From: Orbicella franksi
Taxonomy: Eukaryota
Length of the DNA stretch: 64,000 bases
Reading direction: 5' to 3'
NCBI GenBank assembly: GCA_964199315.1
Contig: OZ116700.1
Coordinates: 10,788,001 to 10,852,000, forward strand
A program made the position numbers and the translations under genes. Below, one piece after another: positions 9,001-33,900 of the stretch (its first letter is position 1; each line of letters opens with the position of its first letter). A model generated the notes under the pieces. That model was not told the origin of the DNA, did not search any database, and saw nothing but the letters and a program-made list of their open reading frames with translations.

Positions 9001-12000
9001 ATGTAGGTGAAATCAAGGAATCACAAATCAGCTATCAATGTTAACCCCGAGGCAGGAGGGGGGGGGGGGCCCAAGGCATATGCAGGGCATTTGACTTAAT
9101 TGCCTTCCCCACCGGTGGGAATTTGACTAAGAGTCTGGGCCCTAGATTGAGGACATTGGATTTTTTTTTTGCGAAGAGGAATGGAACTACATGTATATCT
9201 CTGTCCCGCCTTCTTAAGATAGTTTTTGTGGAGAAGAACATGGGTGTAATTTTGGAGGTAAGAACTTGTTTTGAACAAATAAAACAACTACTTCTCACTA
9301 TTCACTTTCAGTATAAATTGACAGAACAACTCACTTTATGGAGATTGCGCTAAGGTGGGGATATTATTTTGATCTACGTTTACCAATTTTGGGGCCATAC
9401 AGTAAAAATTCTTCTGAAATTCAAATCCCTCACATCCCTCCCCTCAGGCTTAACATTGCATGTATGATAGATGCAGTAGAGATGATAAAAAGAGGAATTT
9501 AAAGTTTTAAAGAGGGCTATGACTTTCAGTTTGAAATCACTTAAAGGCAACAGCTTAAAACTTCCTTCTTAAAATATCTTTCGAAGTTACTTGTCATGCG
9601 TGATATTTTTCTTCATTTTGGTCTAAAAAACAAAACCCAGAGTTGCAGTTCTCTTATTTAATAACTCACAGCTTTATTTAAGAGAAGCTAAACACTGCCC
9701 TTTAAGAATTATTTAACAGTTAAGAAAAGAAGAGTTAAATTCAATTTAAATCATCATTAGTAATCCTGGTTATATCAAAGATTTATTTGATTTATACAGT
9801 TAGTTCCCTTTACCTTATTTAACCCAGAAGAATCCTTGTGCAACTGAGAAGAATCAGGTTTAACTTCTGATTTTAAAGGGTATAGGGGGGATTGTTCTTC
9901 ATCACCAACAGGCTCTTCTTCTTCCTCCACAATTGAGTGCATAAGAGGTGCTTGTGGAACAACAGAGAATTGTTTTTCACTTGAATTTGTAGCCAATCTT
10001 TGAGAAGATGAGTGTTTACCAGCAGATGCTGCTATTGTGAGAACTTTCATCCACTCTTTAAGTTCATCATTATTAGAAGCCACAAAAACCCAGGGTGCCA
10101 TGCCAGACTGCGTGAGTCTGAACACAGGAGTGCGCAAAAGTCGGTCATCCAGTGAGATCTGACAACAAGGCATGATGAGAACATCATATGCCACTTCATC
10201 TGGATCTTGTGAAGGAAATATGCACAGGTGTTGATCAATAAGAACACACCACCAGAGTTTTTCACTGTGCTTTTCTTTAAGGAGTCCTGCAAAATCTGGC
10301 TCTGTCAAGTCCTCAAGGGAAATGTCAAACAAAGCCGCACTGTCTCTCTTGCGACTCTTTCGTTTATTGACAGGAGAATGATTAGAAGCGTTTAGTTCAG
10401 TTGGTGTATTTACGCCTAAGTTATTGCAACTGTCATCATTGTTATTGTCTGATTCATCTTCCTCTTCTTCAATTGGATGGTAAATAACAAGTTCACGTAA
10501 ATCGTTTAGGTTTATTTCCTCGCGATCCACATAACAACCCTGTTTATGTTAGAAGTTACAAGAAAGAAGAGTAAGACATGTTAATAAGGTCAAGTTTTGA
10601 AATTTAGGAAGGAATTAATATCATGATAAGACCATATAGTACAGTCATAAGTTTGGTTTGTTAAGTTTTTGTTTATTTCGTGTCAATGTTTAGCTACTAG
10701 TTAATAAGATATATGAACAAAACACTTACCAATGCTGAACCATTGAAAGTCAAAACTTTTAGAATTTACTGACATATACATCATGTAATATTACAAGATG
10801 TATATATGTATTTGAAATGTACTGCTGACCATTGATTAACATTGAATTTTGCTGGTTGGAGTACAAGTCAGAACTTTCTTCAATGCCAAAGGCTATTATT
10901 TTTAATTATTTAATTTATTCATGAATACACTGGTTTCCAATGTGGTAACTTTCATTAGTCGTCAAAACAATAATTTTATTAGCCACAGGAACAAAAGTTA
11001 AGGAACTGAGGTTAATGTCTTGTAAAATTGGAGGTTAGCTAACATACACAATTTCATTTAACATCATTATGTTATGTATAATTTTTTTAGAATAATTAGA
11101 TCACAAATTATAACAAAAATTTAAGGCAATTGTTTATAAAATAAGTTCCTTTGTTTCACTCTTCTTTAACATTAACTGTTGTTAAACAGTTCAGTTTGAA
11201 CAGTTTCCTGTTCCCCTTATTTCAAGGGGTTTTCCAGTAGTGTTTTAATGGACCGGTTAAACCTCATTAGCACATTATATATAATTAGGCAATTCTATTA
11301 TCAAGAAACTATGAAGCGTGGGCAGATCATAAAATTGTGATCTAATTTTCATTGATATTCAAAAGCTAATGGACCACTGCACAGTAATCAGTAGTTTTTA
11401 TTGTGATTGATCCCGAAAGAACAAGAAAGACAATGACCTGTTTGAAAATTAAAAGGTACAGTAGTCAAAGATGGCCATTTTAGTAACTGAAATAATTATA
11501 TCTGTTCAATGACAATATAATAACATGTACAATACAACCTTGTTAGTTTAACCACCAACATATTTCCACAAACATTTGGCCCTACAATGTTTCAAACAGA
11601 TCAAAGTAAAAACAAAATAGAAATGCAAACCTTTTTTGTTCTGCTTGCTTGCCAGGTTTCTGAATTCTCAGACTGGCCACAACTGGACATGTCTGGAAGA
11701 GATTCACTGCGGGGAATCCCCTCTTCACTGATACCATTGAACTCATTGGTTTCATTTAGCGACTGGCTTGAAAGTGACAATCCAGCATTGAGAAGGCTGC
11801 CATCCTTAAGATTATTGTTCTTCATGTTGTTCAAAGAATTATTCATTCCTTCCACAAGGGTGATACATTCTTTTCTATGAGCGTCAGCCTCACAGCTGAG
11901 AGATTCCTTCAGCAAAATGTTTTGAAGGAAAATACTCAATTTAGAAAGTCCTGTCTCAAATTCTGTGAAGTAGAAAGCAATAACACTGGATCAGGTGAAA

Positions 12001-15000
12001 TACATATTTACATACTAGAGTAACTATGTGTAGATAGTACAGTATGTACATGTAACATGCTTATCAGTGGGAAATTGAGGGTGCTTACAAATACTGTTGA
12101 ACCCTGCCTTACTGCCGCCCTGTTAATGTGGTCACCTTGTTGTTGTGGCTCATTGTTGACCAGATTAATGGGGTTCTACTGTATAGCATTTAGCCACCTA
12201 TTTTGGAAATGATGAACACAAAATTTTCCACAACTGCTTTGCAAACTTTTCCACAAATGTTTTGCAAAATTGTGGTCAATTACCTCCTGTTGCAGAGATC
12301 TATATCCTGGCTGGAAAAATTGCCGAACATACCATGTTTACTCAAATAAGTGCCACCCTCCAATAAGCAATGCATTTGGGATAAAAAAGTTGATAAGCAC
12401 CGCCTCCAAATAAGCACCTGGCTCTAAAAATCCAATACAAAGCAAGTCTAACACAGCACTGGAAATATATTTTCACCAAAAGTGACTTCAGTTCAAAATG
12501 ATTATATTTCACTGTGTGCCCATTAAGTTCTTTGTTTAAGGTTCTTGCAATACATAGTTCTGTTGTGAACATGAGGAGCTTTAGTCAAATTAGAGTCCAA
12601 AAAAATTCACTGCAGGGATGATTACAAAATTGTTTGGTTGCGTCAATCATTACTTAGATATGAGATAATTATATTGACACTTGCACTCAAAGGTGTTTTC
12701 TCAAAATGACATTTTCTGTTTCATGTTTTAGACATTCAAGTCTTTATACATCATGTCAAATAAACAGAGGCCTGCTAGATTAAATTAATATAGAAAAACT
12801 GCGAAACAACATCTGTAACCAATTAGCCGTCTCTAACGAAATTTCAAACACTAAACATTGTGGCTGGATAAGGCTCTCTTTAACACTAAAACTAGAACCA
12901 GGGCCAAAATTTCAGAAATTCTCAGCATGTCCATCTTTTTATACAACACTGTTTAGAAACCGAAGCGGCCACTCATACAATTTCAATACTGACAATTACA
13001 CCTGCAGTCTCCCTAAGAACATCAATAAGTTAAACACCATTTGCTACTTTTGCATGTATTTCTGCCTTGTTTGTTCCTATATCCCTTATACTACATGTAT
13101 TACTAACAGTGGAAAGGACAATCTGTACATTATGTATTAAGTGGTTTGTCAATCAAATACACACTTCTCATTACAAAACACGAAACTTTCAATAGTATTT
13201 CCTTTACCTGACTTACGCTGATTATATTCTTGATCAAAACAAGCATTCGCCACTGTCATCAATGGATACAGAGGATATTACACGATAGTGTGAGGGTCTG
13301 AGTTATACCTTAAATCTTCGAATCAGTGCTTCCCCTGTAATAAGCACCCCCTTCAAAAAGTGCCCCTCCTATCAGCCAAAATTTAAAGTAAGTGCCTCCC
13401 CTCTCCTGTTATAAGGAAGGAGTACTGAGACAACAGAGAATGTATAGTATTGGTCGTGCTTAATCACAAGCAAGTGATTATCGACTCATTCAAGCACTGT
13501 ACATTGACCATCGCAATGGATGGTAGAGAAGTTCCACTATTCATTGCCTGAAGCCTTGCCAACCTGGCACAGCAGGTCTAGACCAGCTAATTAAAGGGGT
13601 TATATATTACATAGTTGTTCAAGACAGACAGGATCCGTCTGAGACTAATCTGAGGAACTGACACACAATTATTACAAAAAAAGCTGTTCATATCTGACCA
13701 CGATTTTGGAAAAATTAAATAAGCAGCCCCCTAGACTAAGTGCCTCCCTCGAATAAGCGTCCTCTGCCTTGTCCTAAATTTGAAATAAGCGCCTTGCAGG
13801 GCTCTCATTCAGGGATTTACAATATTTTCCAGTGGAAAAAATGGGTGCAGCAAGTGAGTAAAATAACATCATCAATACCCCCACTAGTGAGGATATGGAA
13901 AATTCACTACTCGGATCCCAGATGTACAGTTTCATACAACGCTGATTACTTGCTGTGTTATTGGTATTTTATAGTGAACGAGTGCAGGTGAATCATATTT
14001 TTACAACCTCCCTTAAAACAGACTTAATCTTAAAAAATAAAGGAATATTACAATTAGCAATAACTAGTATAAATGTTAAAATGGGTCTTACGTGATTTTC
14101 TAAGAGCTAATACACCCAATATATTTTTAATATTTTGCACCTAGCAAAAGTTGATATATATGAAAAAAATATATAGTACTTTGTTTTGGTTAAACTATAA
14201 ACCATTAGCTTTTTAGCAGACATAAAATTCATTTATTTATCATGAGAAAGTATAGAAACAATACTGCTTAAGATATTAACAAACATTCTTAATAGTCCAC
14301 ATTCAAAAGATATACATGCACTGACAAATCTGCATGCTGCACGTGTTGAAACACCTTAACAGGGCAATAACGTTTTAAGGAATTAGCATACAGCTGAATT
14401 TCCCTTTTAAGTTAGAAATATGGCATATTATATAGTTGTTAACATGAAACAAATAAACACACTTATTGTAACCATACAGCAAATTTGTTACAAGCCTGAA
14501 ATCTACTTATACATGTGTCCCTCAGGAAACGATACCTTTTACTCATAAAAGAAATGCTGGTAGCCATGTAGCCATCTTGCATCTTACATAAACGGGAGAA
14601 GAACCATACTTGCAAACACATTTATTATTTATTATTTCTATTTCTACACCTTAAGAAAAGTGATTGAAATGTTGATAGCTTTGAATGATTAAAGAGCCCT
14701 AAGATTGAAATCAATTGTTAACTTGGGAATTTCACAAAATAACAGTTATGTTTTCAAATAATTAAAATGAAAAAGAATCTGAAACATGTTTGTTGAATAA
14801 ATATTAAGAAAGAACAGTATCTTCTGGTCATTATTTCAAGAGAAATATTCACAGATAATTTAACAAGAAATGCTGCTGCTAGTCAATAATAAGATAAAGA
14901 AGTAAATATACAGGTTCCTGTGAATTTTAATTGTAAACAGAAGCTAAATCCCCTAAAACATAATAAATACAAATAAAATACATGTATGCATCCCAAGTTC

Positions 15001-17390
15001 CCAAACCAATTGAAATGCATTGATTTCATGCAAGGTGTTAGAAATTATTATAATTATGGTCCACAAATATTTCCAAAAAACTGGTCATCAATGACGTATG
15101 TTCTAAAAATAGTAAGCAAACCTCAATATGATTTCCACAAAACTGAAATATGTAAGAGCAAGCATGTGACCACAATAATGATATTTTATGACGCTGTTTG
15201 ATCAACATTCTTTCTTGATGCCTAACTTGTCATTTCAAATCACAAAAATTTAATTTGCATTTTTTCGTCATTGTTCAGTAAGCAACAAGGCAAAGTTTTC
15301 ATCTGGGAATTTCAATTATAATTGACCCATAAAACTTGGACAAGTAAATAATATTTTGAATGACTTGTGTTTTCAGAAGACAAATGGAACTCATAAAACA
15401 AAGAACAAGGCGTGCATGTGTTTGAGCAAAAAACTTATTACATTTACTATTTACTGCTTAACTGGTTGCTAAGAGACAGAGCACAACAACCTTTAAATTC
15501 ACACCTGCGCATTTCTCATACTGCACAATTGATATTCTAATGAGCTTGACAACTATTTGCTGTTTGAAAACCAATATTTCTCGAAATACCGGTAGTTGAT
15601 ATTTTTTCTTTACTGCATTAACAAATGCCTCTTTTTCAACACACTGTGCAGAGCTTTGCAGTATTTTATAATATATATACAATGTTTATTTAAGGGTTTC
15701 AAAAAAGATAAATTTGCCTGAAAGCATTAGTCTGGTCGAGAAGATAACTGATCTAAATTTCAAATTTAAATAATTTCCGCGTTCACCAGTTTATGTCCCC
15801 TAAGTTTGTAAAAACCTAAAAGAAAATGTCAAGAATTGCCACCCTATGTTTTAACTTTACTTTTAGTATAAAAAGAACTATTTACAAAAGTTCAAATACA
15901 AAAATTTGAGTGCCACTTCGTTTTCGTTTGGTCTCGACTCGTCCCACTTGCTATTTCCGTACATCGGCCTTTGAATTGATTTACCGGATGAATTGAACGA
16001 ATAAAATCTTATAATTACAGTTTGCATTTCGATATGACTACACATCCGACGACACTACATTGACAATACAGAAAATTACGCTTCTTCAAATAATATCCTT
16101 TTTTACGCTACAAAGATACGCATTTCATATTGCGGCCTTGAATGTTAAATAGACAAAAGAAAAGTAAATCTGATAAAATATCTTCTTCAAATATTGATTC
16201 ACAGTACTGCCGTATTCTTTCGTAACTTCATAAAATAATATTTTAGGCCTTAGGGAGTCTGTCGACTAATAAAGCAAAACTTTTCGCAGAATCAATTTAA
16301 CATTTGTTTCAGCTGGCGTTTTTAGCGAAAAACAAATGAAAGACGCTAGTCTGGCGAAGTGATGTGAAAAATTACGACAACGACTCTAATGAGAGTTTTT
16401 TCAGCGTCCATGACAAGATTTCAAAAATACTACACCGTAGATGTGATCCAGTCAGATTAAAATGTCGTTTAGACGAAATAAGGATCAGGTTTTCAGAATA
16501 AGACAGCTATAATGGGAGTAACTTACTATAAGCCGGTGATATGCAAATAAATCGGTACCATATTCAATACAAGCCAAGGAGACGAATATTATTATGTCTT
16601 TGAGCATAAAACAGCAGCATCTAAGCTATTGGAAGTAGAATAAATCACTCAGTGTTGTTCTGTGCATCTACGCGGGTGTCAACGACCAGACTGTGGGTTA
16701 AGTTCGGAAAGGGAAGCCTCTCTATTCTTCAACTGCGCGTTAATAAATGGTTGCTTTAGAACTAAACTGAAATAATTTCCTCGTTGGTTTTGACAACTCG
16801 ATCATGTCAGTTTAATATCAACTGTAAAGTGAAACATTCAGTTTCAAATTTCCACGTGTGGAAAAAATCGAGAAAGCTGAGACGCATAGATCACACATCA
16901 AAATATTGAAAGATAATTTAAAACACGGGAAACTTTCGTTGTTCAAATTGCGTAGTTCACGCTGTTGAAAGTGTACGTAAAAGTGAATAAGTCCTTCGCT
17001 TCGGTTCAATGATATATAAACAACCGTTGTGAGTCCAGCACAATATTAATAAGTTTTGGCATCTTTAATCTACTATTTCAAAGTTTGGTGCTTGAATGAA
17101 AACCCTGCTGGAAATCCTACAAATATTCGAGAGCCATGCACAAGCCAAGGAAAAACCTACTTAAAACCCAATGACTGTATTTAATTTTATAATGCTCAAT
17201 CGAGCTCGCGTTCAATGCTCCTTCACACTTCTAATTAAAAACCCTAAAATCGCGATCACAGGGAATGTTAGAGGTCGTGTCAACACACAGTGGAATACTT
17301 GCCAAATCCAATGGTTCACACATTAAGACGACAGCCCTTTTACAACTAGGATCACTTACCTACAAGTACCTCCGCAGATAGTTCAACCAT
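1..17390 (-). CDS. SKAP/AFAP-like adaptor A (N-terminal helical DM-like segment, PH, PH, F5/8 type C discoidin domain, charged C-terminal region); 3'-partial, at least 1140 aa
   Basis: Exons (minus): 17390-17360, 11962-11631, 10539-9814, 7578-6444, 5763-5596, 4909-4764, 3752-3611, 2963-2590, 1454-1256, 168-<1. All junctions are GT-AG with matching phases (1,0,0,1,1,0,1,0,1) and an uninterrupted frame. The protein starts MVELSAEVLVEFETGLSKLSIFLQNILLKESLSCEADAHRKECI. Confidence 0.85.
195..470. mobile_element. PIF/Harbinger-type MITE
   Basis: Imperfect TIRs GGCCCAGTCCACAC...GTGTGGATGGGGCC, flanked on both sides by TTA (192-194 and 471-473). Confidence 0.8.
3309..3493. mobile_element. MITE family X copy 1 (hAT-like CAGGGCTG termini)
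   Basis: TIRs AGGGCTGTCATTAAG / CTTAATGACAGCCCTG; internal sequence shared with copies at 6111-6289 and 41673-41849. Confidence 0.75.
3611..5763 (-). CDS. Adaptor A exons 5-7, F5/8 type C (discoidin) domain
   Basis: Spliced translation GPMPAGVSDGTIEDSAITASS...AWCAKVNDKHQYLQIDL/GEVTKVCGVASQGR...FVKTYTLAYSKDGENW...K/VFQGNHDPDTVVTN...YLRIKPQSWHNHIALRAEVY matches the FA58C consensus. Exon 4909-4764 is absent from the ORF track. Confidence 0.92.
3860..4200. repeat. Imperfect inverted-repeat region around a poly-G tract
   Basis: CCATTCTGG/CCAGAATGG and CATGCAAGCCA/TGGCTTGCATG arms lie either side of the G-run near 4005-4017; many GCTAAC/TTAGC motifs. Confidence 0.4.
5946..6373 (+). mobile_element. 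tRNA-derived SINE, diverged, interrupted by a MITE
   Basis: Head with A-box/B-box-like TGGTGGTTTAACAGTTAG / GGTTTGAGCCC, then CTCTCACAGTGCCTCTCT...CCCAGGTG core shared with copies at 41.5-42.3 kb and 58.7-59.0 kb. Confidence 0.75.
6111..6289. mobile_element. MITE family X copy 2, inserted in a SINE
   Basis: Degenerate left TIR CTGGGTAGTCATTAAG, right TIR CTTAACGACAGCCCTG; internal CCGTAACAGGTGTTACGGGTTA identical to copy 1. Confidence 0.75.
6444..7578 (-). CDS. Adaptor A exon 4, PH domain 2 with flanking acidic Tyr motifs and Pro-rich motifs
   Basis: LAGYAYKANETAKRWFLIREKKLHCYK...LLAKSAKDWERWKKAF; motifs DDVYEAV, DDYVTPV, DFYMEV, EIYEEV, PALPRRP and PLPPVPPELPPPR. Confidence 0.88.
9026..9476. 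mobile_element. Non-autonomous DNA element (MITE-like), diverged
   Basis: Imperfect terminal inverted similarity CTATCAATGTTAACCCCGAGG ... CCTCAGGCTTAACATTG...GATAG; G/C-run subterminal regions. Confidence 0.5.
9814..10539 (-). CDS. Adaptor A exon 3, PH domain 1
   Basis: FAGLLKEKHSEKLWWCVLIDQHLCIF...FVASNNDELKEWMKVLTIAA shows the PH beta1-beta3 pattern and the C-terminal helix Trp; acceptor cag at 10542-10540, donor gtaaag below 9814. Confidence 0.85.
12094..12181. mobile_element. Small Tc1/pogo-type MITE
   Basis: TA-CTGTTGAACCC ... GGGGTTCTACTG-TA; TA on both flanks. Confidence 0.55.
13308..13822. mobile_element. Tc1/pogo-type MITE, diverged relative of the 27807-28175 element
   Basis: Left end TA-CCTTAAATCTTCGAATCAGTGC, right end CATTCAGGGATTTACAA-TA; internal ATAAGCGCC-like subrepeats. 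Confidence 0.55.
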
Positions 17391-19405
17391 GGTTGCAAAC
17401 GTCTTTTCGACGACGACGGCTGTCGGCTGTTTAGGGTTGGCTGATTTTTAACAACACCAACATTGAAATATCGCGCCAGCCGCTTCGAAGTAATCACCCG
17501 AGTCGAAATCTCTCCGAAAATTCACCTTGTTCACTAATCCAGAGAACTAATTCACGAGCGCAGTTCATACACTTTAATAAGCGATCAGACAGATCAACTA
17601 CACAGAGCAGAGCTGACTTCGTTTGGAGATGAGTCCCGAGTGATTTTCAGCAGGGGTGTTACCTGTTCCATTAATTAACCCCGAAGAGAGTGGGCGACAT
17701 TCTTGAGGGCTTACATTTTGTGTTTTGTCCAAAATGATTGGTCTTCAATGACGTCTGATCTCACAAAACAAAATAACTGTCACACCACACTGAAAACATG
17801 ACGTCATTGTCACTTAACGTGACAGTTTCCACTGAATTACTGAGACGATTCCGTGAATTTCCAACAAGAAAGTTTTATTATCGCGTGTGAAAAACTACTC
17901 AGAGAACTTGATAAGTAGCAATTATGTAAATGAAAACCTAACTTTCTCAAATAGCCGACTTCCCTGTAAACTTCGGGCCTCCTTATAAGGGAGGGTTTTG
18001 TTTATATGCGGTGAATCGGTACAAAGATAAACAACAAAACAGGAATTACGTTCTGGAGTCTTTCTTTGCGGAATGTTTGTTTGATCATCGCATTGCATTC
18101 CTTTTATTCAAAAGATTTGAGAGAACAAATCACAGTTTAAATCAAAAACGAGGAACTCGGTCTATTTAAAACCATTGCACAAGCCGGTAGATCTAATACT
18201 AAAATTTTCCTGAAAGGTAAATTACAACGTCCACGCCACCACGCGCTTGAGTAGTTGAGAGATTTTTTTCTGCTCTGAAACTTAATATCTGCACAATTCT
18301 GCTTGAAGTAGTTTGCAATGAGGATTATTTATCTGATCACACAATTGCTTAGCGCCAGATGCCGCAGGACTTCTCCAACATGGTCAGTAAGCCTTGTGTG
18401 TGTGTTGACCTGTGTTGCATTAATTTCATGGCAGTTGATTTAACCACCGATTAGCTATCATTAGCGCTTTGACCCCTTTTCGTCGGACCACCATATATTT
18501 GTCAGTCCAATCAATCAACATGAACATTTTTGGCATTTAATTTAAAACTATATGTATCAAGCTCACCACCCGTAAATTGCGCCAAGAATGTTTAGCACAG
18601 GAAAAGGAAATTGTTATATTTTTAACTTGGGATACTATGCCAACAACATGAAATTTAATAGCTATTGTTTATAATACCTACGTACAACATACTTGACGAA
18701 ATGCTTGACCTTTGACGTCACAAGATTCTAGCGAGTTAAAATAAGGTTACCCCAGCGTAATAACTACTGACCAGAGAACAGTGATGTTCAATACCAGTTG
18801 TTACAAAATGTATAAACTAGCAATTTGTAATGGCAAAATGAGCGGAAGAAGTCAACCAGCCACAAGTTTGGAAATGCCTGTGCTCAAACGGACATGATTT
18901 GCATTTCAGAGCACGTAGTTTCCCAGATAATAACAGTTTCTATTCAAAGCTTTACAATTATCACACTTGTTCTGACACAATAGGAACTGCACCTCACAGT
19001 TTATCTATTTGACCTCTCTATTGTGTACAAAGTTATCAAAACTACAAATTAAAACAAATTACAAGAGGAAAGAACAATGATTTATATTTCTGTATATTTG
19101 CCATAATTTGGACAGTTGTTTTGTGTAACTTACGGGAAAATGCATAAAAATACCAAAGAAGCAGTCGTCCTTTCGAGGTGACATAGTATCGCGCGCAGTT
19201 GAATATAAATTTCCAGCCTCCATTTAGGCTAATTTTTGTCTGAGATTTTGTAACGTCTACTTCTTGTCTTCCGTAATGCCCTTACCGGAACACGCAAGGC
19301 TACAAAATATAAGTGTGCCAGTGTGAAAATAGTTCAAGACTTGTTACTGAAATCTGTCGCCAATATTATGGTCCAATATCGCTGAGGGTCCGCTTAGACA
19401 GGAAG

Positions 19406-19472
19406 GAAGAACCAAACTAAATATGGCGAAGAAGAACCAAAAATATGACGAGGAAGAACCAAAAATATGACG
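19406..19472 (+). repeat. Short tandem repeat, about 21-bp unit x3
   Basis: GAAGAACCAAAAATATGACGA repeated about three times. Confidence 0.7.
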
Positions 19473-20342: not shown

Positions 20343-23300
20343 TTGGAACTCGAATGAAACCACCGGCTTTACTGCGCACTGACTTCAACGGAAATAGGCA
20401 TACTCTGAATAAAAACAAATATGTCCCATATCACTGCTGTCGGCGTCATGTGATTCCATAGCTACTCGAGTTGAATTGAAGAAATTATTGACGGAATTAA
20501 CGAAAAATAATTTTACTTGGGTAACCCAAATGCGCGAGAAAACTGAATTCAAGTTTCAATACTCAAAAGGAAGAAAATGCAAGACAAGATTTTCTTGGAA
20601 TAGCAATACAATTCAATTTTTATTGCGGAAAAGAAAACTGCTAAGCCAGGTCCAATAATAAGCCGTCGAAAGGTTTTTTTGGAATCATTACCAAGGACCT
20701 AAATATTTCACGACGTATTAGTCATCTTTTTCAGCAGCGTGTAAAATTATCTTTATTTCAAGGAAACCACAAAGTGGGTAATTTATCACACAATAGTACG
20801 TAAAGAATAATGATAAAGGAACAAGGAAGCTGAAGATTGGGAAAGATTAAGACGGATATACAGTTTTATACGTTTTTCAGGCTTCTCTTGAAAAGGAGCC
20901 TGCCCAACTTCACCATACGGTTTTGCACACGGAGCAGGGACAGTTGGAGACTGGATCAAGTGAATATGAGAAGCCGGGATTTTAGATTCCCAGGATGGAG
21001 ACTGGGAAAATTAGGTCTGGAAACAGAAACAGAATCTTGGCATAATTCCGTTTTACTTGGTACGGAAACCCGGAAATTCGTTTTTCATCCTCTCCCCTAT
21101 GGTGTATGTCGTCCTTGTCACAATGTTGTTCTTTCGGAGATTCTTACTCTTTCAAAACAACTTGAAATCGGTTGGGAATCGCCCCAGCGGGGTGGGAAAA
21201 GTAAAATATGATCGGTGAAAATGTAGTTTTTGGCCTGATTCGACCCATTTACCCGTGTAGAAATTTTTTTTTTTTTTTATTTTAGAACTGAACTTTTAGT
21301 TTCTATGGAAGAACGCCCAGATTAGAGGAATAAAAAAGAATTTTGAAGGTGATTACGACCGCACAATATATGCGACTATATGCCAATTTTATGTCCGGAT
21401 CATGAATGAGACACTAACACAAAATTTATAAACATTCTGGACTACGAAAGGTGGTGTAAATACGTGGTGTAAATATTCATTCAATATGTAAAACAAAAAA
21501 CACATTAGGCGTACTTGAAAATAAATCGTTCATCAAAAAAATATCTGAAAGCCATTTCAGCTGACCACAAATGCACCTTTTAAGGTTATATTTTTTTTCT
21601 TTTCTCTTTGTTTTTAAGACTCTTAGATCCAGTGGCAATTATTTAACCAACACAGTAATAGTATTCCTTTTACGGGTGATTTTTAGTCAGCGATTACTCA
21701 AAGAGCCATTCCCTTAGGCAAGCAGATGTTTACAACTCAAATAATCTTTGGACTTCTAATGGCCTTCAGCCACATTTTACGAATTTTAAATGCCAGGCGA
21801 GGCGTAGAACGTAAATTTAAAGGTTAGCATTTACCGCTGAAGTGTTCTGACTTCGAGCTGATCCTTGAAAAAGAATGAAAATGAAACTTTGTGTATTTGG
21901 CATCAAAATTAATCGTGGACAAACTGTGTTGTGATCACTGATCATAAGGAAACAATTCGTATCAGCGGATCATTGAAGCCTGTTTTATCGGGAGACAGTG
22001 TTCGGGGATTTGCCGGAGTAAATGGTACAGGAACAAGCACTAGCCGGGATATTAATTGACGGACACAGAATGGAAGAAAAAGCATCTTCACATCAAAGCA
22101 ATTATTTCTTGAGGTAACTAAATAAGACATTTTCATCGTTTGCTACAGATCTGGTTTGTTTTTCCGATTAATGCAAAGCTTGGCGAGCAAACAAGCTTTC
22201 CCTTCCGCTAACAACCGATGGAGCGAGTTACGTTCTTTGTGTTTAGCGAGACCCCGTACGAAGATTGCGGTCGTTTTACACAATTCTAAATCGTTTTCAT
22301 CTTACCTTTTATCTTTTGCCTTCTTTTTCTGCCACCTACTGGATTTTTCTTTGAACTTTCCACTAGAAGTTCTGTTTTATTTTCTGGAATGACGCTCATT
22401 AGGCCATTTCACCTGCATCTAGTTGCGCGAAGGCTGATGGGATTGAAACTTGCCGCGACATCTGCGCGACTGGACGCGGCTGACGTTTGGCGGGAAATAT
22501 GGTGTTTTGTTTTGTTTTTTGCTTTCATATATAAGAAGTCTTCTACTATTTCATGACTAAGCTTATATCTCTCCATTTATATGAACGCTTGACAATATTT
22601 CCAAGGCAACTTCGTCATATTTTATACACATCGCGCAGAATGCCGCGACATATCCGGGACTTAAATGTAGAGTGCGCGCGAAATTTAATTATTAATTAGG
22701 CTGCCGATGGTTAAACAATAAAGAAAATGACCAGAAAATGGCCGACTACGCATACTTGTTTAGAGTTTACGTGCTTCATACTTGTGTTTCGTAGTGGTTA
22801 TCATATGGCTTTTGTAGATGAGACATTGATAGAATAAAGGAGACATTTTTTGAAATCTTACGAAAAGTGGATTTAGTCGTTTTCTTTTCCTGAATTTGGT
22901 CCATTTGAGGGAAAATATTATATGAGGAAATATTTGGAGGAAGAATTTTACTCCTTCAAAGTGCCCTTCTTAAAGGTTATCATACGGCTTTGAATGTATG
23001 TTGTTAAAGGAAGCTTTATGCCAAGTTTTAACCGAAAATAATGTTTCGAAGTGGTCGTTCTGCCAACTTTCGAACACTCGTAACGATCTTTCAGCCTTCG
23101 TTCGCCTCGGAGACTAGAAGAACAATAGAGCGAAACTCTTTTGAATTTCCCGGCAGAATATTAATATATGCCAAGCTCCGCCTCCACAAACAATAGGACA
23201 CACGCCGACGCTATAAGGCATTGAAATTGAGAGGTGATAAAATGTATCACTTAACCATCGTATTTAAAGTAACGCTTTGCGCGAGTTGCAATAAACGAAT

Positions 23301-23891: not shown

Positions 23892-23919
23892 CTTTTTATA
23901 AGAATATAAGTTTATGAGG

Positions 23920-23959
<40 letters not shown>

Positions 23960-25031
23960 CAGATTTTAGGAATAAACTAGAGGCTGGGATTTTGATAAGA
24001 ATATAGTTTTGTGTGTTGAACATTTGTAAAGACAATACAATCATATGTTTGTAACTAAAGCGTATAGAATTCTTCCTTTCTCTAAACGGCAAAACTAGCC
24101 ATAAAGCAACAAAAACAGCACTAAATTAAGTTATTTGCGTCATATCAGGCTGTGGCTCAAAACAGTTTCTAGCACGTGGATTTTGATGGGTCACCATAAC
24201 CAACTTTTATCAATTGATGCTACAATCATGGTATCAAAAACCTACCCAATCATTGGCGAACACGTTGTTATAGCAACAGTATGAACAGCTAAAAAAACCC
24301 TTTATTGCAGCCTTAGGGGCTTGTAATTCAAAAACAGCACGGAGGTTTTTTTTATATCTGATTATCACATTTTGATGATAAGACGCAACTTTTGGCAAAG
24401 TTTTAAAATATCTGTGCATGGGGTCAGAGCCGCCTTAAAGTTTTGAAAATTTAAGGTGGCTCTGAACCCTTTGCACAGTCAACCCTTTCCCGTCTCTTTC
24501 TGTTTTTCAATACCCAATGATACCCCAGCTAAGACCATTGTAACAAAGACTGGGATTCCCTTAGGCCGTCATTTTGCACATTTTCACCTATCTGCAGAAA
24601 CAAGATATTTCGCGGAAACCAAGAGACCCTTGTGCTAATTACTGTTCTAAAAATAGAATGATACGGGAAAGGGGCGGCCCTCGGTTGTAGTACGTATGGA
24701 GGCTCCTGGTAATGGGCTCCTGATCATGCTTATCAAAATTTATTAATATATAAATTCACCGTGCCGTTTTTGAATTATAAGCCCTTAAAGCTGAAATTAA
24801 GGGTGTTTTTAGCGGATTATACTGTTGCTATGGTAACCTATTGTGTCACCAAAATTATAACAACGTGTTCACCAATGATTTAGTTGTTTTTCTGATACCG
24901 TGATTTTAGCATCAAGTGATAAAGAGTGATTATAATTTATATTAACCCATCAAAATCTAAGTGGTCGAAACTACTTTGAGAAAAATAAGAATTTTCAGCC
25001 TCGATCGGAAAAACAATATTCTTATAAAAAG
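23892..25031. mobile_element. About 1.14-kb foldback (long imperfect palindromic) element
   Basis: Outer arms CTTTTTATAAGAATAT...TCGAGGCTGAAA / TTTCAGCCTCGA...ATATTCTTATAAAAAG; inner arms at about 24180-24350 and 24770-24960; central hairpin 24412-24478. Confidence 0.65.
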
Positions 25032-25547
25032 AAAGGTGTGTATGCTTATATGCTTACTTCTGGCCATCTTCAACAGAGAGAGAAAAACTCCTTGTTTCCC
25101 GCACTACAAGCTTGTGCGTCTTTGTTTTGAATTCAAGTCACATGAGCCAGAGGCAGTGATGTTCTTTGTTAACGTTTAACTAGAGAACACCAAGCATCAA
25201 GGTATATATCTGAGAATCCAGGTATCACTACCCCTGGATTTATTGATCATCGGCATTCTACAAAGGAAACTGAAAAATTGTTTCCCCAGCGGCAGTTCGT
25301 GCTAATATCTAGCAAACAGTTCAAAAAGGCTCTGATCGAGGAATGCAGTGATTACACTGAAGTCAGTTGCAGAAAACAAACGAACATATAATTATTTGGA
25401 ATAAATATGGGAGGACGTGAAATTTATAAATCTTAGAAAGTCCAAGACGTGAGAAATTCACAAACCTTGCCAATACTCACATTCAGATTTAAGGGAATGA
25501 CGCATTGAACTGAAGGTCACACGTGATGTTGCAAACTTGTACCAATG

Positions 25548-25800
25548 CAACAACAACAACAACAATTTATTGGTATTCCCATATATATGGTATTACCTTA
25601 AATAACAATATATAAAATATATAAAAAGAAAGAAATTAAAGATAACAATATCACTAATCACATCAAATTAAATAGGATTACAAGTTTCTCTTCTATGCAA
25701 TGCTTCATATGCAAAATAACCTAGTTTCTTACAAATAAACGAATCAACATTATCAAATAGGGATAGAGTTTTATCAGTATTGTTCAAAAGATTGAATGAT
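25548..25800 (-). mobile_element. 5'-truncated LINE 3' end (CR1/L2-like)
   Basis: Minus strand reads FNLLNNTDKTLSLFDNVDSFICKKLGYFAYEALHRRETCNPI*, then a short 3' UTR, AATAAA and a (TTG)n tail. Confidence 0.55.
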
Positions 25801-26977
25801 GGGTATTTTAATTTAGTACAATGTCATTTGTTATTTGTTGCCTAATAGATTTATAACAGGCACAATGAAATAAGAAATGCTGATTGCAAAAGCAGGCAAA
25901 CTGAGACAGTGAAAGACATCATGCAGGGTATAATACATCATATTAATCGACTAGTAAGAAAACTTCCGATTTCTAAAGTCAGTCTGCAGAAAATTTGACC
26001 ATAAACAAAAGAGCATAAGAGAATAAAATAATAGGTCATAAAATTCGCAACTAGCAACTGTATGGAAAGGTTCAAGGGGGAGAGATGCCCAAACCGTTTG
26101 CCCGTTTATCTCCAGTGTCCACCTCAGTCCACAGGTGCAAGGGAAGTTTGTCAAGACGTACAATTACAAACTGGGACAGAGCAGGAACAGTGAACCAAGT
26201 GGAAAGAGGGTGAATTGGGAACGTTGCAGCCAAGCAGCAAATTCATAATACGGTCGGTAAAATTATAGATGAGTCGGAGGTAAAAAAACAGGAGGAGTCT
26301 TGAAGGACCACAAAATGCGTAACACAGTACATCAAAGAACAAAGTGAAGTACTGTAGCTCTTTCAATAACTAAATTTGTATGTAGTTTCGTTTGGAACGA
26401 AAAAAAATATTTTAAGGTAATAATACTAAGCCAGGATTAAGCATCATTTATGAGAACTTAAGAAATGTTTAGTCATTGCTGGCTTAAACTAACGGAAGGA
26501 TAAACTATTTTTCACTGATTACCCCTCGTAGCCTGCTCGTCTTTGTCTGAACGCGCTCCTCGCCGTAATTGAATCATCCCGCCAGGCGCCGGACTTTCTA
26601 AAAGTCCTTTCCAATAATTCCTGCCTGGCTGTTGCCACGCACGCTCGCGACTTGGTCGCTCAAAGATTGTGCTCTCGCTTCGCTCGAGCGAGATAAACAA
26701 GCAAAGAATTTTATGAGCAAAGGTCGACTTGTGGCAAGTCTGATCTAGCCAGGCGCAAGTGCTCAACACTATCTACTAACCACGGACATGTACAAGGGAT
26801 TACAAGTCGTCTTAGTAAGAAAGTTTGCCGATTTTGTGTCCGCAGATTTGGCCGCCCAGGAAGACGAGATCACCGTCGAGGTCCCCACGCTGGAAATTTA
26901 CCACCGTAACTGAAACTGTGACACAAAAAGCTTAAGGTACAACTTAATAACTCAGATCTCAAAAGCCTTTGCCTACA

Positions 26978-27296
26978 CCCGGGAGGGGGGACTCTCATAC
27001 AAAAGGACAGGGGTGCTCATCGGAAATTTTGAAAAGAACCCCTAAGAGGTACCAAGGTCCTGTTTTGTGGGCGTGCCTTGAAATGTTTTTCACCCCTAAG
27101 AGGTACCAATCATAAAACAACACATTATCTGCTGTCATATTTTTTCTGCTCAACACCTTAAAAGGTACAGCAAAAGCTCCAGCTGTGGACCTTTTGAGGC
27201 TGAACACCCTGAGGAGTATCAAAACCGCTTTTCAACCCCTAAAAGGTACGACGAGCACCCCCGTCCTTTTTACTTGGGATTCCCCCCCCCCCCGAG
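26978..27296. mobile_element. MITE with CCCGGG/G-run termini
   Basis: About 40-bp imperfect TIRs (CCCGGGAGGGGGGACTCTCATACAAAAGGACAGGGGTGCTC versus the reverse complement of the right end); five internal CCCCTAAGAGGTAC-like subrepeats. Confidence 0.75.
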
Positions 27297-27806
27297 CCTA
27301 TCGCGAAAGCTAACAATCTAACAAACGATACTAACGATGTTCGTTCTAGATGCCACGCCCCTTGCGTCCGGTCTTAATCTTGATACGAATTTATCATTTA
27401 CCCGATCTTTCGCGGCGTATAGATTACATACTAAATAAGATGCCTGATTAATTCGTCGGATGACTTGTCTGATGTAGATGTGATCTCTTCTTCTAGTAAG
27501 AGAAAAAAAAAAACAAAGAAAACAGGTAATTATGCGACCCGGCAAGTTTAATTTCATGCAGATGATGACAGAGGTATGAAGCTGTCGTGAGACTGTAAAA
27601 AATATTTTATTAATCCGAAATCATGACGGCCAGTCGGATCATTGGAATCTCTGATTTATACACTGCACTGAAATCGGAAGTAGTTTTCTCATCGAACGTA
27701 ATCAATATAGGTTTACGACAACCTAACTTATCTCACACAATCTATACAGTATCAAAGTGTTTACTGTCAAATATCAGACGAAAATGTGGCATGTGAGCGG
27801 GATATA

Positions 27807-28175
27807 CCGTAAATCCTCGAATTAGCGCCCGGGGCGCTTATTTCAAATTTAGGAGAAAACGGGGGGGGGGGCGCCTATTCGAGGGGAGGCGCTTATCGAC
27901 GGGAAGAGGCGCTTATTTAATTTTTCCCAAATTGTGGCCTGAGATGATCATTTTTTTAATACATCATAAGCTGTTTATCGACGTAAAAAGCTGATCCTAA
28001 AGTTTAAATCGCGGCACCGCTAGTACTTGCAATTTTTTTCCAAACTTAACGTGTTCACAAACTGAGACAATGCACAAATCTAATACTACACGACGAAACT
28101 ATACTTCCTTTGTTGTCTCATTACTTGTCCACAAAATGGCGGGAGGGGAGGGGGCGCTATTTCGAGGATTTACCG
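27807..28175. mobile_element. Tc1/pogo-type MITE
   Basis: TA-CCGTAAATCCTCGAATTAGCGCC ... GGCGCTATTTCGAGGATTTACCG-TA; TA on both flanks; internal GGCGCTTATT subrepeats. Confidence 0.8.
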
Positions 28176-30970
28176 TACCTAAATATCCGTTCCTGTAATA
28201 CGAGCCGGATTGTAAACGCGGATTTCGCGTGCGCGAATCGCGTGACTGTGTGAAAACTTCATCTACTATAGCTTTGGTGTCGTTTCCTCCACTACGCTAC
28301 TCTTTGTGGCTCGTGCTGTAACCGCCTCCACTTACCTTATGGTGATCCGCAGGAAGCGATGATACACTTCAGTTAGAAGTGAGCCATGACCCCAAGTGTT
28401 TGATCACGGAACTCAGAAGGCACTCTGTTCTAGTTTCCCTTTTGGCCGACAAGTTTACTCAACGCTCTATGGATCTCTATGAAATAAAACACTACTCCCT
28501 AATCGTTGCTAGCTATTTGAGCGTTAGATTATCGAATTACTGTCCGTCAAATAGTACATCTGAGAGCTTTTGGCTTTCCAAAAATATAACATCACGATGG
28601 AAAAACGTTTTTCGAAGGTTATGCGCTGGCTACGTAGAGACGGAACAATAATTCCAAAAAACTGCAGTTGTTAGCTTGCAGCTGATGAAGCTTATTTACG
28701 CTTTGAAGATAAAATGCTGTCCACATGACAATCACGCGACTCTGGTAAACGTACTAGCTTGTCGAGTGTCCATTTTAATAATCTCACTGCAATTTTTCTC
28801 TATGTTTATATAATTAACAACTTCCACTGGCTTCCTCTCCGGATTGGACTGACATGGAGGGGATCACATCCACGCAACCTGCAGGCCCGCGATTAAGGTC
28901 AAACCACGATGGACAAATCATGTCAGGTGAATGACATTATGAAAACACGGGTCTAGACATTGCAATGAAATTCGGTCGGCGCAGCTCTCACTATTGAATC
29001 CAAGCAATCTCTTCCAGGAACCAATATATTTTTAGCCTCAAAAATTGGCAGTTTCCTTTCCTGTGTATGATAAGCTCATTACGTTAAGATAAGGCAGATC
29101 CCCATTGAGCACGAAAGACCCGCTCACCTCATGGTTTAAGGGCGGGCGGAATCACCGACAGGAAAAGATCATTGATATCGTTAAGAAAGTGGCTGGAAAC
29201 GGACATATTCTGTTACCGAACAAGGGATTAATTAGATTTATTTTTGTACGCCGAAGAGATATGTTACTGTTGTGTCCTCTGACCACTGACCGCAGAAGTT
29301 GAACATCTAACATGACAGACTTTATAATTTCGTGGTTAGCCAATCTAGTTCGATACAAGATTGCTATCTGACGTTTTACAGCGCTTATGCCGAGTTTTCC
29401 TCTTCAAAAGAAGTACTTCATGGCATGTACATTGCACTTAAAAACAAAGTTTCCTTTTCAGCAAAACTTCACTGCAGGCAAGCAACTGCTTCTCTTGCAG
29501 GACTCGTCACGCCTTTATCGGTGTCGCCTGGCTGCAGGCGTGACTTAAGTGGCAGGGCAGAACGGAGCGAAACGCCATTCCACGGTATAGATTACATACT
29601 GCCGTAACTCATTGACTGCTATGAAAGCGATATCCTAAAGTCTAGCTGGCGAACGGTTCGCTAGACTTAATAGAAGATCTCTAATTCAGAATTTTTCAGC
29701 GTTTACTTTATCGAAGACGTTTATCTGATATCGTCATTTAGTGCTAATTTGTCTAATTTTCTTACTAGAAAGCCTTTTTAATGCTCTAAATGTTTTCGAC
29801 GGGCTTTATTTTGTTCAAGTATGTGACTGAGGATTAAATATAATCGACCCATAATTCGGTTAGCGAACGCTGAAAGCAAAACTCTCGATAATTTCAAACT
29901 CGAAGGCGTGCCAATTATTCAACTTCCGGGCCAAATGGGCACGGCAGTAAACCAATATAATGTGGATATAATGTGGTGAAAAATGGGAAAGAAAGAAACG
30001 AAAATAAGTAAAAGAACGCGCAGAAAAATAAATATTGTCGTTATTGCTGATTGCTAACGAGATATGTCTGGTTTACAATGTACTTGGCGTAATTCCGTTG
30101 ACCCGAGTCGGCTGGGACCTATATCTCTCAAACCGTTATTGATCATGCATGCATCCATTTGGCTTAAAGTAAAAAAACACGCGTTGAATATCTGATCAAT
30201 TTAGCCTTTGCGCATTTGTGAGTGTCGCGATCTATCGGGAGGAAAACTTTTTGCCAAAAAAAAATGAATCAGTGTCGAAACTGAGCGCGGAGTTCCTTGT
30301 CGACAGTTTCAGATCAGAAAGTTCCTTTGATGATTCCTCTCAATTTATTTTTTCCTTAGGATTTCATTGATGATATTACTTTTCGACAATTTTAATTTAA
30401 AATCCTGTTCCACCTCGGCTTTTATTTATCCTGTTCAGATTTCTACAATTTAAGTTTTGCTATTGCGGCGTTTTCGCACATTTTTGACAGCTGGGTAACT
30501 TTTGTGTTATTTTTTGTTGCTAGCAAAACATTGCTAAAATAAACAGAGTATAGAAAGGGTGCGAACAGCCGGTTCCAAAAAGCTACCAACCCTCTTTATT
30601 TTTGCATGTAGAAGCACTTAAATATAGCATTTTGAGCTTTCGTAACTGAGTTTTGAATGTTCTAGAATTTTTTTTTTTTCTCGTCTGTGATTGTGTAATG
30701 GGCTGAGTAGGAAATCCGTCAGATTTGATCAAGTCTCTTTCGGGTAGCCGCGAGTGCCGTCATAAGCATCAACCAATTAGAATGCGAGTTGTCGGTCATC
30801 TGATCGCAAAGTCAACACTCCAGAGTTTCCTTTCGAACAAGAAAAACATGGCGGTGAAATTGATGAGTCGTTTGTTTTTTAAGTAGAATTTTTAACGTTG
30901 TAGCCCTGGATAAAGCACATAATGGGTTGATTTATACGATGCAGTATATGGTTTGGCTAACTAGACCAGA

Positions 30971-33900
30971 ATGGATAAACATGACCGCTTTCTTGGTGAG
31001 TTTTTCGTCTGTAAACTTGGGGCCTGTTTACAGTGACTGCGTGTGTTGTATCGCTTCTTCATCCGTGATTTCCATATTTCGTATTTGTCTTCATAATCTT
31101 CAAGGCTTGGGCTTGTTTATGTTACTATATTGAAAACATCTAATACTCAAGCGATCTTTTAATCTACATTGTTTTATGGACGTTTTTTGAACGCCATCCC
31201 TCATGTGTAAACTGTATTCTCACCATCAAGTCACTCTCTCAACAGCTATCAACCAAACGCTCCCTGGCTTGGAAGATTTTCTCAAAGTGGTCCTTGGTAG
31301 CGAGCCATTGAGTGAGGAAGCGAACAGACAACGAATTGAATTTCTCAGAAGGTTAGAAAGTGTATCGCGACCGCCATCGCTGCCGCCTAGACCTGCAAAC
31401 TTGAGTGAAATTTATCGCACGCGTCTCCAGCAAAACGAAGCTCCGTCCGGAAGCGGCCTACAAGATGAAAGCAGTGTGTATAAAAACGACAAAGCAATAG
31501 ACCCAGTTCAGTTTGCCTCACAGCAACGTGAATTATCCAGAATCGCTACCCTGTGCAAGACTTATGCTCCGCAAACTGTTATTATCGGCGAGAAGGGAAA
31601 TAGAAATGGAGGCTTGTATTTTGCAAGGCCGGGAAACACAAGGGTAAGTGATGAGGCTTCCGTGAAGCGACTCTTATGACTTTCTTGAAGTTTCTTGATG
31701 TATACTTCAAGGCATAGCCTTTTAAGTTGTCTTAATTTGTACTTATCCCTTGTACGTGACTGTATTTATTATTCAAAGTAATATACTTGCCCTCCCTGCC
31801 GCGAAATACAGTACCGAGGCATGAATAATTTCGTAAACGTGAACTCGCATATTAGCGAAACCAGTTGATCTCCTCTGATCTGATACCGCATTGTGAATGA
31901 AAAAAATTGTGCAGGCTGTGAATATTGCCCTTTTACCCGTAAGCTAATTTTCGATTAACTTAACGCAGTGTAGTGAATCACGTCAGGGATATGTATAAAT
32001 TTGTGAAAATGTGTACGTAGCTAATACAGTTATCGCGTGGAAATAATCGATCAGTAATACTTCATTGCTGATAAACGACTGAAATCTACAAGGTAGCTTT
32101 CTTCATTGAATTTAAAATCGTTCTCTTTGTGGAGTTAAAACAGCATTTATACAATTGGTTGTTTTTAAATAGAATATAGTCATGGTTTCGTTTCAAAAGA
32201 CACAAAAGATCTTTTGTTCCGTTTATGCTAAATTACCGCAGATCAACACCTTGCAATTTCCAGCGGTTTTATGGAGAGGAGAGTTTTTGTTTCAGACGGA
32301 TGTTACAGTCACCCCCCAAAAATTCTGTGCTATATAATTTCAACTTTTAACCTTTCTGAAATACTGTGTATATATATCAAGCTAATTTTAATATTCAATT
32401 TATAGCAAAATAGCACTTTGATGCATTTGTAATATTAAATTTCCTTGCTTTACTTTATGGACTTTCTCTTTCCTCGAAGAACTAGTCAGTTACAAGAATA
32501 GTTATGGTAACTGAAAATTAATCAGAATTGAAAGTGAAAGATATTTTCGACTGACTTGCTGAAGCATAAAATGAGTTTTGTCAGTTTCACATGATCTTAA
32601 CTTCTATCTAGTTCCAAATACTAGAAAGCGATGATGTTTCAAGAAGAACGCGATGACATTTTTGTCTTCTGTAGTGTATGATTTCAAGCTCATATCTCAG
32701 ATCAATGTGTAAATGTAATACTGGAATCTTCATGTTATTATCAAAGATTATCTGCAACGGCAACGTTAAGACGCTCAAAAATTCTTCAGATCTTGTTGCA
32801 AAGGAGTTCTTGAAAGTCTGTAGAAATATATTTTTTAATATAATTGTTTTTTCTGACTTAAATGTAAATTGTTTTCTAACCTTTGTACTAAACCTTCATT
32901 TTATCATGAAATTAACTATCACCACAGACATTTTATCTTTTTCTTTAAATTTATACAAAAGTTACGTGGGTTTATAAATACCAAAGTTTATAGGTAAAAA
33001 ATAATCCTAAATGCTGACTTACATGTTGACATGTTATCTTGCTCAAGAGTGCAACATTAGAATCGTGTGAATTTTTTGAAATGTTTTACAAGCAAAAGAT
33101 ACTATGCAAATATAAACTATAGTGTAGATTGTCACATTGTCATTAGACCACATCATTGTGATAGACTTTTTAGGATCTCTGCTAAAAGCTTTGAACAATA
33201 AAATCTAAGAGGTGTGAAGATCGGCCAGTCTTTTACACATGAAAGTCCATAATAAGCACCCAGATATTCTAATCACAAGATTTTTTTTTGTCTTTTCTTT
33301 TTAAAGCTTCACATGAAGAGTCGAGATCTCTTATTTTTAGAGAGTAATTAGTTCATATTACCAGGATAAATATGATGTCATGGCAAACAGTTTCAAGTTA
33401 CCATTGCCGTAATACTGAGTTATCCTAAACTTCACAGTGGCTGGTAAAACATATTAATCTTTCAACTGGGAAAAGATTGTGGTAGATTTTCTGACATTTC
33501 TTCAAGCAGCAATGCTTACTTGTGGCGTAAAGCACTCTGTTTTTCTTTGTGTGCCTGTTGACCTTGCTTGACATAATTAGCATTTTTGACAAGCCTTCTT
33601 GAACTACAGCAATTAATACCACATTTGAATTTTTTCTCAACGATTGTCTATCACTTTAGTTGATTTTCCTATTGAATGAACCATCAATATTACTTTCTCC
33701 ATGTAATTATAACCTACATGTACTGTATCTCTTTTCATCTAAGTGATCCTCAGATACCATGTCTTTGTAGTTTTTCTTGAATCTAAGCAGCTTAAATTTT
33801 TTGCATATCAGAGACCTTATCTTTGGGCCTAAAATGCTTTAGTTTTGGATTTTCATGTGAGACAGATTGGTGCAAAACAATCCACAAGAAACAAGTTAAT

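Follow-up and report, generated by a model that had tools for sequence, protein, structure and literature searches.

A candidate SKAP-type dimerization hairpin at the head of two divergent multi-PH scaffold genes in the coral Orbicella franksi

To our knowledge, the dimerization domain (DM, or DIM) of the adaptors SKAP1 and SKAP2 has been described only in these two vertebrate immune proteins. Whether the same hairpin can also stand at the head of large cnidarian scaffolds is the question raised by a 64,000-nucleotide stretch of the Orbicella franksi genome (GenBank assembly GCA_964199315.1, contig OZ116700.1, positions 10,788,001 to 10,852,000 of the forward strand; hereafter the window, in whose coordinates positions are given unless another contig or locus is named), where two large PH-domain scaffold genes diverge from start codons at 17390 on the minus strand and 30971 on the plus strand, 13,581 bp apart. 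We propose that these minus and plus genes are paralogous multi-PH scaffolds, each headed by a helical hairpin homologous to the SKAP DM that follows a tiny first exon and a phase-1 intron, and through which the encoded proteins would dimerize; this is, in our judgment, the likely reading of the locus.

The N-terminal module of the two genes

In both genes intron 1 is in phase 1 and falls one codon ahead of the aligned module, which begins at residue 10-11 of either protein and is followed some 110-200 residues later by the first PH domain (PH1). The plus-gene intron spans 250 nucleotides (nt) and ends with its acceptor AG at 31244-31245, so that exon 2 starts at 31246, completes the split codon G|CT (Ala) and continues as INQTLPGLEDFL (INQTLPGLEDFLKVVLGSEPLSEEANRQRIEFL); exon 2 of the minus gene begins at 11962 after a CACAG acceptor (AG 11964-11963), with the split codon G|AA (Glu) followed by FETGLSKLSIFLQ (FETGLSKLSIFLQNILLKESLSCEADAHRKECI). 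The two modules align over 34 residues without a gap (12 identities, BLOSUM62 score 33), and with the intron setting the register 200,000 shuffles yield z = 4.9 and p ~1e-5; when the complete exon-2 products are aligned locally with the register left free, p is ~0.01. Up to this point direct reading of the sequence reproduces what an earlier, sequence-only reading of the window had described, namely the head-to-head gene pair with its coordinates, the tiny first exons with their phase-1 introns and the ungapped alignment. That reading had further taken the two N-termini to be related, and comparison of the plus-family with the minus-family alignment by hhalign bears this out, with a probability of 90% (P 1.4e-6) that becomes 94% (P 8.6e-8) once a third coral paralog and a Saccoglossus sequence, both described below, are added, in either case over 37 ungapped columns and in the register set by the intron. 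The resemblance extends to the first PH domains, as no other PH pairing between the two genes is better than that of minus PH1 with plus PH1 (32% identity across 119 residues). Because of both the module homology and the PH1 similarity, we regard the genes as paralogous over at least module and PH1, and judging from the sequence this collinear similarity fits the old inverted duplication suggested earlier.

Transcripts lacking the first exons would have spoken against the earlier reading, but RNA supports the first exon of the minus gene and orthologs support that of the plus gene. For the minus gene, where placement of RNA on the genome covered 11640-17600, the junction 17360->11962 is seen in three RNA runs: in four raw polyA reads (X24), in a 1532-nt contig at depth 64 (X8) and in one further contig (X11); run X22 has no reads on this stretch and so does not bear on the junction. 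Three X24 reads instead pass from 11964 into letters unique in the window (22308-22337) and point to an alternative first coding exon, the in-frame ATG of which we place by reading at 22399; both transcript forms, starting at 17390 and 22399, include the module exon. On the plus strand, at least 12 RNA runs drawn from several studies have contigs that span the complete module exon, and the predicted start is matched by annotated orthologs: four full-length homologs (P0013, P0019, P0020 and P0021, three of them from Oculina, Stylophora and Acropora with NCBI or UniRef names and one a Logan assembly product) begin MDKHDRFIAINQTLPGLE.

The arrangement recurs outside the coral, in Nematostella. 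The minus PH1 exon, searched against 1.84 billion representative sequences, returns 45 matches that include Nematostella vectensis LOC5506548 and fragments of plus-family PH1. Isoforms X1 and X3 of LOC5506548 begin MASDGDIFFDFDNGLHKVGFFLQETLQKEQLSTVAELHRQECI (MASDGDIFF|DFDNGLHKVGFFLQ...), and the first exon of the gene measures 28 nt and is separated by a phase-1 intron of 2.1 kb from a module exon starting G|AT TTT GAC. Pfam finds PH, PH and F5/8 type C (F5/8C, discoidin) domains in its isoforms, and LOC5506548, which agrees with the minus gene in module, phase-1 intron and domain order, is its ortholog. The phase-1 intron position is identical in the three coral paralogs and in Nematostella. 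Two further minus-family modules lie on metagenome contigs (L006 and L009), and the hemichordate Saccoglossus kowalevskii contributes LOC102800563 (P0075), which has a module-like N-terminus ahead of three PH matches; like LOC5506548, it is an unannotated protein. The Nematostella gene also shows isoform variation: X2 starts at an internal Met right after the module, so that a module-less form is predicted, and X3 skips the PH1 exon (P0028 versus P0071/P0070).

Proposed kinship with the SKAP dimerization domain and with the AFAP1 family

Which known domain does the module resemble? A profile of seven modules (A3) ranks SKAP2/SKAP-Hom (1u5e_A/2otx) first among 177,635 PDB sequences, with an ungapped match to residues 5-45 at E 4e-4, and a profile of nine cnidarian and hemichordate modules (A4) again places these residues at the top of the PDB without gaps, now at E 2.4e-5 and 27.1 bits, the runner-up standing at E 0.18. 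Scored on the SKAP2 DM itself, the minus family reaches 20.4 bits, the minus family with Saccoglossus 24.9 and all modules together 26.3, and with these three profiles none of 2000 composition-matched shuffles of the SKAP segment scores above 11.6 bits. Structural comparison leads to the same family. The AF2 model of the minus module, the one that was modeled, consists of two helices (2-18 and 23-53) joined by a four-residue loop with a pLDDT of 91, and Foldseek places 1u5e_B and 1u5e_A at ranks 1-2 of 350,542 PDB chains, with a root-mean-square deviation (rmsd) of 1.0/0.9 A over 39-41 residues and a probability of 1.0. Among 550,129 Swiss-Prot models, ranks 1-15 are all taken by the N-terminal DMs of SKAP2 and SKAP1 (residues ~8-60, rmsd 0.5-2.1 A, 20-31% identity). 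The SKAP-type dimerization N-terminus proposed earlier finds support in both the profile match to 1u5e/2otx and the structure search. Since one family sweeps the structure ranks and an independent profile match agrees with it, homology to the N-terminal DM/DIM of vertebrate SKAP1 and SKAP2 is the best reading of the module, as judged from sequence and model. The SKAP DM (1u5e, 2otx) and the coral module both occupy the extreme N-terminus of their proteins as helix-loop-helix segments of ~40 residues, with a linker and then a PH domain behind them, and they share the pattern L-x2-[VL]-x2-F-[LV]-x2-[VI]-L-x2-E-x-L-S-x2-A-x3-R.

Several results nevertheless weigh against this homology or against carrying SKAP biology over with it. 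On the SKAP2 DM the plus family alone scores 10.2 bits, barely above its best shuffle at 9.5, and its link to SKAP consequently goes via the minus family. No Pfam family covers either module, phmmer searches of the single exon-2 products against the PDB return chance matches only, and a narrow profile (A1) built from five near-identical plus sequences and one minus sequence finds no SKAP match in the PDB. The individual Foldseek E-values range from 0.08 to 1.2, as expected for 54 residues. Beyond the module, PH1 of both genes has its nearest solved relatives in PLEKHA4/5 and KIAA1914, and the SKAP PH domain is not listed at E <= 1; the coral PH domains are in general closer to the PLEKHA4-7/KIAA1914 type than to that of SKAP. 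The coral proteins further differ from SKAP in having two to six PH domains rather than one, in the discoidin domain or 900-residue acidic tail appended to them and in a module-PH linker several times longer. They also have no C-terminal SH3 domain: Pfam detects none in the window exons or in the orthologs P0013, P0019, P0021, P0028 and P0071, where it reports only PH and F5/8C domains, in line with the absence of the SKAP SH3 that had been claimed for both proteins. Because they have no SH3 and their PH1 lies nearer to PLEKHA4/5 and to 2cof, the KIAA1914 structure, than to the SKAP PH domain, we do not consider the coral proteins SKAP orthologs. In SKAP the linker between DM and PH domain is far shorter than ~110-200 residues, and a SKAP-like DM-PH clamp is doubtful because module and PH1 lie that far apart in the coral proteins.

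Some of these points would equally suit a different account, in which the module is either a hairpin for binding a partner rather than itself or a convergent amphipathic hairpin with no relation to SKAP: the module is short, its individual structure-search E-values are not significant and the plus family alone hardly scores on the SKAP DM, and the DIM domain of SKAP1 has RapL and RIAM as binding partners too (PMC10939263). This account sits poorly, however, with a profile E-value that falls as members are added, from no match to 4e-4 and then 2.4e-5, with the loop motif E-x-L-S-x-x-A shared with SKAP, with the uninterrupted run of SKAP1/2 DMs at the top of the Swiss-Prot models and with the same placement at the extreme N-terminus before a PH domain. 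We therefore hold this account to be distinctly improbable, and homology to the SKAP DM to be the better description of the hairpin.

A second kinship that had been put forward, with the N-terminus of the AFAP1 family (AFAP1, AFAP1L1 and AFAP1L2/XB130), found no support in a comparison that covered teleost AFAP1L1. Against 15 diverse teleost AFAP1L1 N-termini hhalign does settle in the expected register, but the match is weak (P 0.038, probability 1.4%). None of 119 teleost AFAP1L1 proteins receives a positive score from the module hidden Markov model, which fares no better there than on reversed decoys, a profile of the AFAP1L1 N-terminus finds nothing in the PDB, and AFAP entries are absent from the Foldseek Swiss-Prot top 30, as opposed to 15 SKAP entries. 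The module is thus not detectably related to teleost AFAP1L1 N-termini. Outside the module there is more in common. Members of the AFAP1 family are, like the coral proteins, multi-PH cytoplasmic adaptors with a helical N-terminus, they share with the plus gene proline-rich and tyrosine motifs ahead of PH1, and the similarity of the PH domains is weak but real: 2cof ("Protein KIAA1914") is the second-best PDB match for PH1 of both genes (E 5.6e-4 and 2.7e-3), with PLEKHA4/5 equally good. KIAA1914 we take to be AFAP1L2. Residues 1-700 of the Oculina homolog P0013 retrieve two fragments and one chimeric fish AFAP1L1 (E 3.3e-4), the latter without an N-terminus of its own, and the Acropora and Stylophora orthologs bear the name "Actin filament-associated protein 1" in UniRef/NCBI.

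Database names, the teleost AFAP1L1 match, the shared 2cof match and the expected hhalign register could all be accommodated if both genes were simply cnidarian orthologs of the AFAP1 family and the module its N-terminal region. Such a reading is hard to square with the weakness of that hhalign match, with the failure of the module model on the AFAP1L1 proteins, the empty PDB result of the AFAP1L1 profile and the lack of AFAP entries among the best 30 structural matches, or with architectures that differ in PH number and C-termini (six PH domains and an acidic tail in one protein, PH-PH-discoidin in the other). Nor was an AFAP-like C-terminal coiled-coil or actin-binding region identified, Pfam reporting nothing in the tails and no dedicated profile having been used. 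On balance we think it unlikely that the genes are AFAP1-family orthologs, and retain the SKAP DM as the closest known relative of their N-terminal module.

Possible dimerization and the neighboring pair

What would such a module do in a large scaffold? In SKAP proteins the DM folds as a helical hairpin, dimerizes into a four-helix bundle and keeps the PH domain inhibited until PIP3 binds (PMC10603853). Each coral protein begins with ~10 residues from the tiny exon, joined across the conserved phase-1 intron to the ~40-residue hairpin, behind which lie a long disordered linker and then PH1. By analogy with SKAP-Hom, two hairpins would pack into a four-helix bundle, so that each scaffold could engage membrane phosphoinositides and its other ligands bivalently. 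Our default expectation, and the most likely outcome, is homodimers; mixed dimers among the three coral paralogs are conceivable, with a precedent in SKAP1/SKAP2. From the same analogy we infer that dimerization, DM-PH autoinhibition and a link to Src-family kinases may apply to the coral proteins. Structure prediction adds little on either side: a complex of the plus and minus modules, predicted with alignments unused and controls not folded, scores 0.02 with both chains at pLDDT ~50 and so returns no verdict, and the AF2 model of plus-family residues 1-360 has a mean pLDDT of 48, is confident in the PH domain only and is too poor to show docking of DM and PH domain.

The head-to-head arrangement invites a more specific proposal, that the neighbors form a dedicated heterodimeric adaptor system, joined via their DM modules and co-regulated from the shared intergenic region. 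The modules are indeed homologous and aligned in the same register, DIM domains can associate homologously or heterologously (PMC10939263), and studies P2, P3, P4 and P5 each contribute RNA runs that cover exons of both genes, although this RNA comes from whole colonies in which cell type is not resolved. The pair is, however, not alone in the genome. Scanned with the module profile, the coral genome yields three copies, two of them in the window and a third 8.4 Mb away at C3:19282791-19282901, which reads INFALPGLDIFLEEILAQENLSEKGEKIRLDFVAILDNL, has its acceptor in the equivalent phase-1 position and belongs to a gene on the minus strand (C3:19265000-19283000; loci L012-L015) in which two or more PH exons and an open tail exon of 566 residues come after the module. 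The plus module is closer to this distant copy (16/39 identical) than to that of its minus-strand neighbor (13/39). Given this third paralog at 8.4 Mb, the family has at least three members and the neighbors do not make up a closed pair. Furthermore, with start codons 13.6 kb apart, or ~8.6 kb from the alternative first exon, the genes are too far from each other for a classical bidirectional promoter. Exons of the partner family are absent from the 10 kb that lie upstream of the plus ortholog in Stylophora (L001) and of the minus ortholog in Nematostella (L002), a result that decides nothing on conservation of the head-to-head order because the gap in the coral window itself measures 13.6 kb. 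We consider a dedicated heterodimeric pair improbable, and homodimerization of each scaffold the outcome to be expected first.

A broader picture can be drawn in which the SKAP hairpin is a pre-bilaterian cassette that at first stood ahead of multi-PH scaffolds and the three coral paralogs would form a combinatorial network of homo- and heterodimers, joining a PH adaptor with a discoidin domain to a giant acidic scaffold with six PH domains and tuned by alternative first exons or module-less isoforms. We offer this as speculation and hold it to be improbable.

Gene architecture, distant relatives and evolutionary reach

The features of both genes are collected in Table 1. Pfam and the charge profile bear out the domain content described earlier, with PH-PH-F5/8C in the minus gene and, in the plus gene, a total of six PH matches ahead of an acidic tail of ~900 residues that carries a net charge of -17 to -28 per 150 residues. 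The product of the giant last exon of the plus gene shares 70% identity with a protein of Oculina patagonica and ~60% with those of Stylophora and Acropora. For the C-terminus of the minus gene the earlier description held in part: the discoidin domain is there, but the protein does not end with it, as the Nematostella ortholog still aligns at 163-26, and the gene for this reason continues beyond the discoidin exons and past the left window edge. Between the two genes Pfam has zero matches in eight intergenic open reading frames (ORFs), and there is no recognizable coding sequence in that interval.

Table 1. Positions of the features of the two divergent scaffold genes within the window
Feature	Position	Strand	Basis and remarks
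Plus gene, first coding exon (MDKHDRFL + 1 nt)	30971..30995	+	25 nt; ATG 30971-30973; phase-1 donor GTGAGT; sequence read directly
Plus gene, SKAP-type dimerization-like module, A-INQTLPGLEDFLKVVLGSEPLSEEANRQRIEFLRRLESV	31246..31365	+	Sequence; hhalign against minus family; member of profile A4
Plus gene, remainder of exon 2: conserved proline-rich RPPSLPPRP motif and linker	31366..31640 (3' bound approximate)	+	Ortholog alignment, columns P51-P58 invariant
Plus gene, exon with PH1	36357..36845 (approximate)	+	Pfam PH; tblastn with Oculina P0013
Plus gene, exon with PH2	39176..39529 (approximate)	+	Pfam PH; tblastn
Plus gene, giant last exon: 4 PH, acidic tail of ~900 residues, stop codon	44560..49506	+	Pfam; charge profile; 70% identity to Oculina P0013 residues 863-2520
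Minus gene, alternative first coding exon, 31 codons + 1 nt, with basic patch GGRKRRQKIK resembling a nuclear localization signal	22306..22399	-	3 polyA reads (X24); phase-1 donor
Minus gene, first coding exon (MVELSAEVLV + 1 nt)	17360..17390	-	31 nt; ATG 17390; phase-1 donor GTAAGT; RNA junction 17360->11962
Minus gene, intron 1	11963..17359	-	5397 nt, GT..AG; RNA joint reads CT..AC on the plus strand
Minus gene, SKAP-type dimerization-like module, helix-loop-helix, E-FETGLSKLSIFLQNILLKESLSCEADAHRKECITLVEGM	11844..11962	-	Sequence; AF2 model; profile; Foldseek
Minus gene, remainder of exon 2: Ser/Asn-rich linker	11631..11843	-	Aligns with Nematostella LOC5506548 residues 8-119
Minus gene, exon with PH1	9991..10518 (approximate)	-	Pfam PH; tblastn with Nematostella P0071; 32% identity to plus PH1
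Minus gene, exon with PH2	6727..7515 (approximate)	-	Pfam PH, E 8.5e-8; tblastn
Minus gene, F5/8 type C (discoidin) domain in three exons (~5543-5764, 4764-4910, 3609-3755)	3609..5764	-	PF00754 profile positions 2-44, 42-82, 85-127; tblastn

Several further observations concern these genes and their surroundings. The F5/8C domain of the minus gene (3609-5764) sits within an otherwise cytoplasmic-looking PH adaptor and is kept in Nematostella. In the plus family the linker holds an invariant RPPSLPPRP (31366-31400) and an invariant tyrosine motif, DDIYEHL (alignment columns 50-58 and 156-163, respectively), which by their sequence are candidate ligand sites for SH3 and SH2 domains. Beyond the 3' end of the plus gene a hyaluronidase-like gene can be read by eye at 54364-57522 (+), and because the Stylophora ortholog has a Glyco_hydro_56 gene at the equivalent place (L001 36159-39249) the downstream synteny is conserved. 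A repeat-encoded ORF (EYFYSPLDGMLVH...GTHLYTWV..RGTVRV.C.AQEHN) occurs both within an intron of the plus gene (41987-42259, +) and within one of the third paralog (C3:19278440-19278721, -), and is probably a common coral interspersed repeat. As for more distant relatives, the nearest non-cnidarian counterpart of minus PH1 is the first PH domain (motif LPDHSGWL...WCV.ADML.CVF) of a family of two-PH proteins of 600-1100 residues from molluscs, hemichordates and others (P0038, P0040, P0042, P0045, P0046, P0048, P0053, P0061, P0064 and P0067); the models examined have no N-terminal module and carry no functional names.

A literature search found no paper naming both SKAP and cnidarians, and nothing relevant for SKAP together with AFAP1 or for AFAP1 together with coral, and Pfam lacks a model of the SKAP dimerization domain. 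Because the hairpin heads both coral genes, the cassette appears to be much older than SKAP, and its presence in cnidarian PH scaffolds, together with the module-like N-terminus of a hemichordate protein, would move its origin to before the cnidarian-bilaterian split. The finding is one of a known domain in new architectures and with a deeper evolutionary reach, and not of a new mechanism. It would allow better annotation of proteins that are now labeled uncharacterized or loosely "AFAP1", and it offers in module residues 10-50 a testable dimerization handle on three large coral proteins.

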